Shown: piece by piece, positions 29,533 to 51,896 of the stretch
How the letters are laid out: each line of letters opens with the position of its first letter
Position numbering within the stretch: position 1 is the stretch's first letter
Origin: Octopus sinensis
Lineage: Eukaryota
Direction: 5' to 3'
Length of the DNA: 64,000 nucleotides
Assembly (NCBI RefSeq): GCF_006345805.1
Contig: NC_043010.1
Coordinates: 50,158,001 to 50,222,000, forward strand
Program-made: the position numbers and the translations under genes
Notes under the pieces: model-generated
The model's input: only the letters and a program-made list of their open reading frames with translations
Database searches by the model: none
Told to the model about the DNA's origin: nothing

Positions 29533-29664
29533 TTAAAACCACTGGTCGAAAATATAGAAGCCCAAGCCACTTCCCATTTTCTTCAGTTGTGTTTCGTAGT
29601 CGGAGATTTGCTTGATGGACTTAACTTGCTCCTCTAGAAATTCATGTGCAATAAAATATTTCAA
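29533..29664 (-). CDS. Ferritin last exon [43 protein letters not shown]
   Basis: TTATTTCAG acceptor; [10 protein letters not shown] and GLGxYxFD motifs; TAA at 29533-29535. Confidence 0.95.
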   Translation of the reverse strand: MKYFIAHEFLEEQVKSIKQISDYETQLKKMGSGLGFYIFDQWF

Positions 29665-50600: not shown

Positions 50601-51896
50601 GTATGACTCGGGAAGGATTTTATGCTTTTTTTTATATATATAATAGGCGTAGCTGTGTGATAAGAAGCTTGCTTCCCAACCATATGGTTCCGGATTCAGT
50701 CCCACAGCGTGGCACCCTGGGCAAGTGTCTTTTGCTATAGCTTAGGGCTGACCAAAGCCTTGTGAGCGCATTTATCAGACGGAAAATGAAAGAAGCCCGT
50801 CATAAATATATAATTACATACATACATACATACATACATACATACATATATATATATATATATATATATATATATATATATATATATATATATATATATA
50901 TATATGTATATATATATTAGAAAAAAACACCTTTTATCAATTCAAAAATGAAAAACTAAATTATACCATTTAGAAAAATGACATATAGAAAGATTAAATG
51001 TAAGATAAAACATATAACAATGATTAAGTAATGTGCAAAATAATAAATAAAACGTATATATTTGGTAGAATAACGACACGTGTTTCGTGGCTATATTTAA
51101 GAAATGATAATAGTAATAATAATAGTAAAATCACGTCAATATAAATATAGCCACTCTTCAGGTTGAAGATAAAAACTATAAAATGATTAATTAGATAAAT
51201 TAATGAATATACGTAAATAATCTTGTGAAATGCGAAATATCTTAACAAATATATTCTTGTTTAAATAAAAAAATAGAATAAAAATAAGATACAATTAATT
51301 AAAATATTTAAAACAAATATATATATATAAATATATATATATAAACTACAACATATACATTAAGTGAAAACTAAATACTACAATTATTATTATTATTATT
51401 ATTATTATATATATAGACACACACACACACACGCATATAATATATGTATGTGTGCGTGTGTGCGGGTGTGTTTGTATTCCTGCATTTCTCCTCCACTACC
51501 GCTTGACAATTGGTGAAGGTGTGTTTATATCCCCATAACTTAGCGGTGTTCGGCAACAGAGACCGACAGAATAAGTATCAAGCTTTCAAAAAACACTATG
51601 TACTGGGGTCGATTCGTTCGACCAAAACTTCTTCAAGGCGGTGCCCCAGCATGACCGCAGTCTAATGACTGAAACATGTAGAAAGATAAATAAAAAAAAA
51701 ACATTAAAAATTGGATTTACTACTTTACAAAATAAAATAGTTGGAAAGATTTTGAACTTACGACAATAGGAATTTGCGGCGGATAAAGATATCCACAGAT
51801 TGAAAACAAGTAATATGCTGATAGTTCTCCTCATTATTTTGCTGTTGTTGTCCATTTTAAAAACTTTTATTTTATTTCGGTGATGCTGTTGGTCTC
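29533..51896 (-). CDS. Secreted (yolk-type) ferritin gene, multi-exon; about 208 aa with the seven well-supported exons and about 230 aa if three more micro-exons are real
   Basis: Exons 51762-51855, 47895-47971, 42139-42285, 40330-40365, 39372-39407, 35684-35788 and 29533-29664 have phase-compatible GT donors and AG acceptors and give the ferritin four-helix-bundle motifs in order. Confidence 0.9.
32284..35070 (-). mobile_element. Decayed Penelope-like retroelement (RT present, 3'-truncated before GIY-YIG) in a ferritin intron
   Basis: Fragments [66 protein letters not shown] and HPRY, with frameshifts. Confidence 0.9.
34367..34595 (+). mobile_element. Family D SINE inserted into the Penelope element
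   Basis: 16-bp TSD AGATTAATAATTTTTA (34351-34366) / AGATTGATAATTTTTA (34596-34611). Confidence 0.85.
35684..35788 (-). CDS. Ferritin helix C exon (NKID)[31 protein letters not shown]
   Basis: Polypyrimidine TAG acceptor and GTAAGT donor at the conserved DPH/L intron position; AMxxAxxLEK motif. Confidence 0.9.
36069..37109 (-). CDS. Three candidate ferritin micro-exons: 37090-37109 (20 nt), 36504-36521 (18 nt), 36069-36106 (38 nt)
   Basis: Each has an AG acceptor and GT donor; chained they read [25 protein letters not shown] but then need the downstream AG at 35779-35780. Confidence 0.35.
37152..37460. mobile_element. Non-autonomous DNA element with ACCTCCGCC / GGCGGAGGT termini
   Basis: Inverted termini at 37152 and 37460. 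Confidence 0.5.
37940..38180 (+). mobile_element. Mariner transposase C-terminal relic
   Basis: [10 protein letters not shown] ... RNECTKF*NRIEA-like translation. Confidence 0.5.
39372..39407 (-). CDS. Ferritin micro-exon [13 protein letters not shown]
   Basis: TTTTTTTGTCTAG acceptor and GTAAGT donor; 36 nt, phase 0-0; paralogous to micro-exon A. Confidence 0.7.
39590..40196. mobile_element. Non-autonomous Helitron-like repeats (partial 39590-39760, fuller 39813-40196)
   Basis: ATACTAGCAGTATCGCCCGGCGTTGCTC start, internal AAATTTCATCAGAATCGG-like motif, ACAGAC repeats at the end; this layout resembles animal non-autonomous Helitrons. Confidence 0.5.
40330..40365 (-). CDS. Ferritin micro-exon [13 protein letters not shown]
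   Basis: TTTTCTTTTGTCTAG acceptor and GTAAGT donor; 36 nt, phase 0-0, no stop. Confidence 0.7.
42139..42285 (-). CDS. Ferritin helix B exon [49 protein letters not shown]
   Basis: 147 nt, same length and boundaries as vertebrate H-ferritin exon 2; TTTCAG acceptor and GTAGGT donor. Confidence 0.95.
43264..45830 (+). mobile_element. Decayed R4/Dong-type LINE (N-terminus and RT)
   Basis: [61 protein letters not shown] and AINTWAV fragments; C-terminal piece at about 46490-46740. Confidence 0.85.
43560..43948 (-). mobile_element. Full-length family A SINE inserted in the LINE
   Basis: 14-bp TSD ACAACATAAGAGAT at 43546-43559 and 43949-43962. Confidence 0.9.
46795..46935. mobile_element. Mariner terminal fragment
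   Basis: TATGAGGGGGTGCTGAAAAGT terminus. Confidence 0.5.
47895..47971 (-). CDS. Ferritin helix A exon (L)[25 protein letters not shown]
   Basis: Poly-T CAG acceptor and GTAAGT donor; 77 nt, phase 1 to 0; matches the QINxELxASYxY motif. Confidence 0.9.
48983..50250 (+). mobile_element. Tigger/pogo transposon relic, 3'-truncated and interrupted at about 49736-49900
   Basis: Psq-type HTH ([10 protein letters not shown]...MSRTTVSTI), CENP-B HTH (IIQEKAL...[10 protein letters not shown]), start of the DDE domain ([16 protein letters not shown]); GATACCTCGACTTA terminus. Confidence 0.85.
51072..51164 (-). ncRNA. Canonical-core minimal type I hammerhead ribozyme motif (Penelope-type)
   Basis: AAC-CTGAAGA-GTGGCTATATTTA [42 nt] TAAATATAGCCAC-GAAA-C-ACGT-GT-C-GTT; perfect 13-bp stem II, palindromic stem III ACACGTGT, GUC triplet. 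Confidence 0.7.
51762..51855 (-). CDS. Ferritin first coding exon, signal peptide [31 protein letters not shown]
   Basis: Basic n-region, hydrophobic core and SAA cleavage motif; phase-1 GTAAGT donor after 51762; possible acceptor before 51896. Confidence 0.75.

Follow-up and report, generated by a model that had tools for sequence, protein, structure and literature searches.

A gene for a predicted secreted ferritin of the molluscan insert-bearing type in Octopus sinensis, with a loop insertion encoded by two mini-exons

The ferritin gene and its locus

We analysed a stretch of 64,000 nucleotides of Octopus sinensis DNA (NC_043010.1, positions 50,158,001–50,222,000 of the forward strand; below, 'the window', in which positions are counted unless another locus is named), a eukaryotic, AT-rich and microsatellite-rich region that holds a ferritin gene on its minus strand. 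Human FTH1, which served as a tblastn probe only, matched a set of collinear ferritin pieces, and AG/GT borders with compatible phases could be read directly from the DNA around them. Seven coding exons with GT-AG introns, running from 51855 to 29533, splice into a 208-residue ferritin, and to judge from its sequence the gene probably encodes a secreted, ferroxidase-competent (H-type) subunit of the molluscan yolk/haemolymph lineage to which gastropod yolk ferritin and chiton ferritin belong. A first-pass annotation had placed a hidden gene of about 22 kb at 29533–51896. The gene is real, with a match to ferritin that chance could by no means produce, and measures 22,323 bp from start to stop; 29533 is the last base of its stop codon, and between 51896 and the first in-frame ATG, 41 nt downstream at 51855, there is no other ATG. 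It is not hidden, because it is already annotated: the spliced product is 100% identical to RefSeq XP_029644988.1, ‘soma ferritin-like [Octopus sinensis]’, which UniProt names ‘Ferritin’. The annotated locus in assembly GCA_006345805.1 (chromosome CM016872.1) matches the window at 100% identity, and its start-to-stop span has the same length. The RefSeq name is wrong, an automatic best-hit label, and the gene is best described as a cephalopod representative, so far uncharacterised, of a known family.

The exons all lie on the minus strand. Exon 1 (E1, 51762–51855) begins with the ATG at 51855, encodes the signal peptide (31 residues plus one base, phase 1) and ends at a GTAAGT donor. E2 (47895–47971), set between a polypyrimidine-CAG acceptor and a GTAAGT donor, encodes helix A with E27 and Y34 (human H-chain numbering, which we use for all ferroxidase and channel positions), and E3 (42139–42285, 147 nt) encodes helix B (SHYFERSD...) with E61, E62 and H65, the triplet RRS instead of RGG, and an N-glycosylation sequon, N104-V-T. 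Two mini-exons of 36 nt each encode the insertion between helices B and C: E4 (40330–40365; TAG acceptor, GTAAGT donor) supplies its first half with Cys108, and E5 (39372–39407) its second half with Cys120. Helix C with E107 is encoded by E6 (35684–35788), and helices D and E (...FDQWF), with Q141 and the residues Tyr168 and Ala171, by E7 (29533–29664), which closes with the TAA stop at 29535–29533. A model of five exons differed from XP_029644988.1 only at the junction of exon 3 and the helix C exon, where the RefSeq protein has 24 extra residues, and these are encoded by E4 and E5. The motif ATTAAA at 29510–29515 (minus strand), 18 nt past the stop, is a candidate polyadenylation signal, and AATAAA motifs start further downstream at 28876 and 28204.

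Upstream of the start codon, positions 51856–52060 (minus strand) are the predicted 5′ untranslated region (UTR) and promoter, and a (CA)n microsatellite starts further upstream. A scan for the canonical iron-responsive element (IRE) motif, defined by a C-bulge, a 5-bp upper stem and a CAGWGH loop, found none in this region nor anywhere on the gene strand across the 64-kb window, including 12 kb upstream of the gene, and the same scan was negative for the loci of the O. vulgaris orthologue, the chiton, Biomphalaria and Argonauta. As a positive control it recovered the IRE CTTCTTCAGTGTAGGAA of an amphioxus cytosolic ferritin (locus L007, 2903–2919), 98 nt upstream of the ATG and with 5 of 5 upper-stem pairs; this control element sits just downstream of a TATA box. 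Rfam searches had likewise returned no IRE, for the window at the gathering score and for 51700–56000 at E ≤ 10, and we discarded these results because Rfam missed the amphioxus control IRE too, which makes its negatives untrustworthy without a control.

Protein fold, iron sites and the B–C loop insertion

The five-exon product, which lacks the insertion, matches the Pfam Ferritin family (PF00210) with E=1.7e-20 over profile positions 2–142 of 142, and AlphaFold, run on a 66-sequence alignment, modelled the protein at a predicted local distance difference test (pLDDT) value of 91.3 with helices A (34–62), B (69–95), C (132–160), D (164–195) and E (199–207). The first-pass claim that all ferritin helices are present thus holds. 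Foldseek returned only ferritins, with target-normalised template-modelling scores of 0.82–0.86. All sequence matches in the PDB break between residues 97 and 132, and hence no solved structure contains the insertion, in which the AlphaFold model has a short helix (114–123) at lower confidence. At the N-terminus a basic n-region with RR is followed by a 14-residue hydrophobic core (maximum Kyte-Doolittle mean 2.43) and a small-residue c-region, and on these features (charge, hydropathy and cleavage motif) we call a signal peptide, as the first-pass annotation did; it occupies a separate exon and is conserved in the O. vulgaris orthologue and in a paralogue. Cleavage would most likely fall after residue 27, between SAA and NS, to leave a mature chain of 181 residues and 20.9 kDa.

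The ferroxidase centre is complete, with all seven residues (E27, Y34, E61, E62, H65, E107 and Q141) in place. The replacement of RGG by RRS noticed earlier is present, and Gly-Gly is missing from all cephalopod sequences that we compared. The three-residue deletion before helix D, also noticed earlier, is confirmed relative to cytosolic ferritins, and a deletion of 2–3 residues at this point is common to other secreted molluscan ferritins. D131 and E134 of the three-fold channel have an established role in the entry of iron into ferritin, and both of these carboxylates are replaced in the window protein, by D131Y (Tyr168) and E134A (Ala171). Among the sequences compared, the pair of Tyr and Ala is confined to this protein and its O. 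vulgaris orthologue; position 131 is His, Lys or Asn in the other members of the secreted clade, which keep Glu134, a residue at least 90% conserved across 66 ferritins. Iron entry is thus probably altered, or else supplied by co-assembly with the neighbouring paralogues that keep E134, and because this loss is joined by a ratio of nonsynonymous to synonymous divergence (dN/dS) near 1 (see below), efficient iron loading should not be assumed.

A Cys-containing insertion between helices B and C had been read from the DNA in the first pass, and it is there: 24 residues with Cys108 and Cys120, placed exactly between exon 3 and the helix C exon. Both cysteines are invariant in an eight-sequence alignment, in which the insertion opens with a conserved hydrophobic-Cys-[DENQ] pattern. 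The N104-V-T sequon immediately precedes it, and the cephalopod relatives, too, have sequons at this place or close to it, which the proteins of snails, bivalves and chitons lack there. Human FTH1 exon 2, at 147 nt, has the same length as E3, and on the strength of these exon sizes the insertion exons appear to lie in the ancestral intron of the B–C loop, intron 2 of vertebrate ferritin genes. The amphioxus ferritin gene was examined as a control for this middle intron, and the intron is missing there.

The two mini-exons belong to a tandem duplication. Each sits in a unit of ∼300 bp made up of intron flank, exon and intron flank, unit A with E4 at 40198–40488 and unit B with E5 at 39237–39525 (both on the minus strand), ∼962 bp apart. 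The intron flanks of the two units are 91.5% identical, whereas the 36-nt exons are only 58% identical (22/258 versus 15/36 mismatches; Fisher p=1.7e-6), with the Cys codon and an LTG motif kept between them. Either the mini-exons diverged fast once duplicated, or homogenisation affected the introns while the exons were kept distinct, and both accounts of the contrast imply that selection acts on the exon. Copies of the unit, 74–77% identical, also flank the mini-exons of a paralogue.

Family membership, orthologue and paralogues

The yolk ferritin of the snail Biomphalaria glabrata is defined by a signal peptide, the lack of an IRE and a 42-residue insertion (PMC10799875), and an insertion of ∼40 residues in the loop region is typical of molluscan secreted ferritins (PMC6351634). 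An exhaustive homology search with the octopus protein found five relatives below 1e-30, with the next generic ferritins near 1e-22. A profile of the secreted relatives matched insert-type ferritins at E values of 1e-61 to 1e-87 and cytosolic ferritins at best at 1e-48, and the insert group in this search comprised chiton O15972, a Crassostrea ‘yolk ferritin-like’ protein, Mya and unnamed cephalopod-like sequences. A Patella ‘yolk ferritin’ used as a query reached the Biomphalaria pfeifferi ‘Yolk ferritin’, Physella, Bulinus, Aplysia, Pomacea and oysters, all with an insertion at the same place, so that the insertion is carried by proteins named yolk ferritin from Patella, Biomphalaria, Aplysia, Physella and Crassostrea. 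In the literature searched we found no mention of the octopus accessions, nor of a cephalopod yolk ferritin.

Gene structure is the strongest evidence for membership of the yolk-type family. The seven-exon layout is common to the genes of Biomphalaria yolk ferritin (locus L003), the chiton (L002) and Argonauta (L006), and in all three the insertion lies at the same intron position as in the octopus and is split over two exons, the second of which opens with hydrophobic-Cys. By its position and its exons the octopus insertion is the homologue of those in Biomphalaria, the chiton and Argonauta. Neighbour-joining trees of 162 core columns, with signal peptide and insertion excluded and 300 bootstraps, recovered the cephalopod clade as monophyletic in 300/300 replicates. 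Its sister group consisted only of insert-type molluscan ferritins in 267 of the 300 (89%), and cytosolic ferritins appeared in the sister group in none; in 63% of the bootstraps the molluscan insert type and the other lophotrochozoan secreted ferritins formed one clade. The core sequence as we read it excludes a cytosolic origin and favours the yolk type, which the core alone does not prove.

The public names would suit an ordinary cytosolic ‘soma’ ferritin whose N-terminal exon and mini-exons are artefacts of gene prediction, and the ferroxidase centre is the same as that of cytosolic H chains. This explanation is hardly credible. E1, E4 and E5 have canonical splice sites with borders conserved in O. 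vulgaris, and the exon layout is equal in Argonauta, the chiton and Biomphalaria yolk ferritin; without exon 1, helix A has no start codon. Moreover, the name is automatic, the IRE motif is absent, and grouping with cytosolic ferritins was seen in 0/300 bootstraps and the signal exon is present, which are two of the points on which the first-pass proposal of a secreted ferritin could have failed.

The orthologue in O. vulgaris (locus L005) has an intact open reading frame (ORF), all seven exons and all 12 splice sites, and the introns of the two species are ∼97% identical. Of the eight nonsynonymous changes that separate the coding sequences, the helix A exon has three, the helix C exon four and E5 one, whereas the exons for the signal peptide, helix B and helices D/E have none. 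The outer face of a ferritin shell is formed by helices A and C and by the B–C loop near the two-fold axes, and the cavity is lined by helices B and D; the distribution suggests, on small counts, that the exterior changes and the interior is constrained. The stop codon has moved as well: where O. sinensis has TAA, O. vulgaris (L005 ∼23960) has TAT, and its protein is longer by three residues (YQH).

Several observations weigh against a functional secreted ferritin of the yolk type. The insertion, which the first-pass annotation had called long, is 24 residues with two Cys, as against ∼40–47 residues (∼42 in snails) with a four-Cys C...CxC...C pattern in snails, bivalves and chitons. All insert-type ferritins are monophyletic in only 39% of bootstraps, and with hidden Markov models (HMMs) built without cephalopod sequences the octopus core scores 157.0 bits against other lophotrochozoan secreted ferritins, 144.7 against the yolk type and 135.3 against cytosolic ferritins, so that the core alone does not tell the yolk type from other secreted ferritins. 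An IRE could yet lie in an unrecognised far-upstream exon. Secretion, glycosylation, disulfide formation and assembly into 24-mers are all predictions, and no Logan transcriptome-derived sequence clusters with the window protein at 90% identity. Finally, with eight nonsynonymous and two synonymous differences from O. vulgaris (proportions of changed sites pN 0.0159 and pS 0.0165), dN/dS is ∼0.96 on only 10 substitutions, and together with the loss of D131 and E134 this could reflect relaxed constraint.

These last points raise the possibility of a decaying or functionally relaxed duplicate that has kept its ORF and has no working iron storage, for which the unique loss of both channel carboxylates, including a Glu so widely conserved, the moved stop codon, the lack of transcriptome-derived cluster members and the two paralogues nearby would also speak. 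We consider it improbable, because neither species has lost an exon, a splice site or the ORF, the complete ferroxidase centre and the two insertion cysteines are conserved, and the eight nonsynonymous changes are spread unevenly, over the helix A, helix C and insertion exons, which points to purifying selection inside the shell and change outside it, not to general decay; the counts are in any case too small for a firm dN/dS. The yolk-type reading is thus supported at family level. The signal peptide, the lack of an IRE motif and the position and exons of the insertion speak for it; the length of the insertion and its Cys count do not agree, and the core HMM scores do not discriminate between the yolk type and other secreted ferritins.

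O. sinensis has paralogues on the same chromosome, XP_029645065/66 (‘ferritin-1, chloroplastic-like’) and XP_029644608 (‘soma ferritin-like’), and in O. vulgaris a tail-to-tail pair of paralogues shares a chromosome with the orthologue, at a distance of ∼240 kb. At the O. vulgaris paralogue locus (L001) the gene extends over 49 kb, compared with 22 kb for the window gene, and its insertion is assembled from 6–7 mini-exons of 33–45 nt. One of them, a 33-nt cassette mini-exon at L001 45402–45434 (SDDCKHLYSAK), is a near-duplicate of SDDCKHSCPAK at 46283–46315 and accounts for the 11-residue gap between RefSeq isoforms X1 (258 residues) and X2 (247 residues) of the O. sinensis paralogue. When the paralogue insertion was used as a query to look for extra unannotated mini-exons in the window, none was found. 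A 221-residue octopus paralogue retains the C...CxC...C pattern with four Cys, and the window-gene insertion, on comparison with it, looks like a reduced derivative, with the four-Cys paralogue as the link back to the ancestral form.

The window gene and the paralogue at L001 form a collinear mosaic. The regions of the promoter with exon 1 and of exon 3 are ∼95% identical, introns included, with 29/31 residues of the signal exon the same and ∼92% amino acid identity in the helix B exon, whereas the helix C exon is 62% identical in nucleotides and 34% in protein. Exons and introns were compared in 300-nt global alignments, in which many indels and microsatellites disrupt the flanks of E2 and E6, and the mosaic is to be read qualitatively only. 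Two observations concern neighbouring ferritin genes. The O. vulgaris protein CAI9733140 (368 residues; L001 64657–68892) joins a divergent, ferritin-like, signal-bearing N-terminal part of ∼147 residues to the 221-residue paralogue, and is probably two neighbouring genes fused by annotation. In Argonauta, a second ferritin gene (L006 15068–15763) lies tail-to-tail with the relative of the window gene, 2.3 kb from it.

Outside the ferritin exons, an ORF of 161 residues without a Pfam match lies at 53589–54074 (plus strand), ∼1.7 kb upstream of the ferritin gene and on the opposite strand. It has counterparts in a 161-residue gene upstream of the O. vulgaris orthologue (L005 1–267) and a 176-residue gene upstream of the paralogue (L001 4662–5192); the latter lies inside a block 93.5% identical to the window and was thus duplicated along with the ferritin 5′ region. 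In intron 1, two adjacent ORFs at 49432–50058 (plus strand) form a remnant of a pogo/Tigger-type transposase (CENP-B_N E=5.4e-13, HTH_Tnp_Tc5 E=4.6e-08), the only element that Pfam identified among the intronic ORFs tested. Clusters of broken ORFs of 50–160 residues at 32792–34511 (minus strand, intron 6) and 43264–45850 (plus strand, intron 2), of which the tested fragments had no Pfam match, look like coding remnants of transposable elements. Shorter intronic repeats include a pair at 36707–36812 and 40556–40659, 85–100% identical, and the segments 40821–41274, 50645–50883 and 51435–51690, which have many copies at the paralogue locus L001; such short interspersed repeats are probably families of short interspersed nuclear elements (SINEs) or miniature inverted-repeat transposable elements (MITEs). 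Sub-threshold Rfam ‘miRNA’ matches (mir-297, mir-3149, mir-1277 and others) at 52800–52990 and 55240–55920, on both strands, were rejected as hairpin artefacts of TA/CA-rich microsatellites, and exactly 100 N at 21576–21675 mark an assembly gap.

Possible role and comparison with known systems

If the window gene encodes a secreted ferritin as proposed, the nascent chain would enter the endoplasmic reticulum and its signal would be cut after Ala27 to give the subunit of ∼20.9 kDa. Asn104 may be glycosylated, and a disulfide between Cys108 and Cys120 is probable. The subunits would form a 24-mer shell with the inserted loops displayed on the outer surface near the two-fold axes, and the exported particle would carry or store iron outside cells, in haemolymph, yolk or another secretion; the egg or haemolymph iron carrier suggested in the first pass is a candidate role within this range. 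Its synthesis would presumably be under transcriptional control and not under that of the iron regulatory protein and IRE.

It is possible, though on balance unlikely, that egg iron is not the main role of the secreted protein, which might instead act through its outer surface, to withhold iron in immunity, to deliver it by way of receptors to particular tissues, or to form part of a secreted matrix. Divergence is concentrated on helices A and C and the B–C insertion, among orthologues and paralogues alike; the duplicated mini-exons diverged ∼5 times faster than their introns, and the paralogue has a mini-exon array with a cassette exon that differs between RefSeq isoforms. Chiton relatives, moreover, are discussed in the literature with haemolymph and radula iron transport, not yolk, and the matrix proteome of the Argonaut eggcase includes a ferritin, its type unspecified, which is no more than a lead. 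However, that proteome holds housekeeping proteins too, and gene conversion that homogenises introns could also give the contrast between exons and introns. Such a role concerns physiology only and is compatible with the family assignment given above. More tentatively still, octopod secreted ferritins might carry a fast-evolving outer display loop, built from arrays of 33–45-nt mini-exons, grown by tandem duplication of units of exon and intron in which the exon diverges much faster than its flanks, and varied by a cassette exon in the paralogue, a doubtful idea as it stands. The concentration of nonsynonymous change on helices A and C, with the helices of the cavity wall unchanged, would fit it. 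If it were true, the exterior of an iron cage would be under diversifying selection for recognition, for example by oocyte or tissue receptors or in a microbial arms race over iron, and the window gene, without its three-fold-channel carboxylates, could be a specialised or partner subunit.

To our knowledge, gastropods are the only animals whose secreted yolk-type ferritin has been characterised; for chitons and bivalves the type has been discussed. Since cephalopods retain the lineage together with both exons of the insertion, its origin can be dated to an early stage of molluscan evolution. The analysis corrects the automatic names ‘soma ferritin-like’ and ‘ferritin-1, chloroplastic-like’ and points to a small family in octopods, which in O. 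vulgaris comprises three genes in a stretch of ∼330 kb. Little is known of how these animals transport iron or what their yolk consists of, and the family could serve as a carrier of iron outside their cells. A natural D131Y/E134A variant and a surface loop made of mini-exons offer material for studies of iron entry and for engineering of the cage surface. The general understanding of ferritins is unchanged, and the gene model was already public.

Among known systems, cytosolic H-type ferritin (human FTH1 and mollusc soma ferritins) shares with the octopus protein the fold, the ferroxidase residues and the intron positions between helices A and B and between helices C and D, but it has no signal peptide and no B–C insertion, carries an IRE in its 5′ UTR, and keeps RGG, D131 and E134. 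Arthropod secreted ferritins have a signal peptide and form heteropolymers of heavy and light chains. Other lophotrochozoan secreted ferritins, such as those of Lingula (XP_013396207) and nemertean-like sequences, share the signal peptide and extracellular destination but lack the B–C insertion exons and have their extra sequence at the N-terminus. The comparison further covers the octopus paralogues, which differ from the window gene in the 6–7 mini-exon insertion, the cassette exon and the retention of E134, and the chiton ferritins (Liolophura japonica O15972, P0159; L. sinensis XP_064603995, P0011, locus L002), which share the signal peptide, seven exons, the lack of an IRE motif and a two-exon B–C insertion (ISDVCDK...ASAC / ICEF...) and are among the best profile matches (E 1e-76 to 1e-80), but have a longer insertion with extra Cys and retain E134 and H118.

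Gastropod yolk ferritin, reportedly described from Lymnaea stagnalis by von Darl et al. in 1994, is represented in our comparison by B. pfeifferi (P0293, locus L003). It shares with the octopus protein the signal peptide, the lack of an IRE, the ferroxidase centre and a replaced D131, as well as the two-exon B–C insertion at the same point, the deletion of 2–3 residues before helix D and the seven-exon layout. The snail protein differs in its four-Cys insertion of ∼42 residues, RGG and E134, where the octopus protein has two Cys in 24 residues, RRS and A171, and the cores are only ∼30–35% identical. In snails, yolk deposition and expression in the digestive gland are established; by its gene structure the octopus protein groups with this gastropod type and with that of the chitons.

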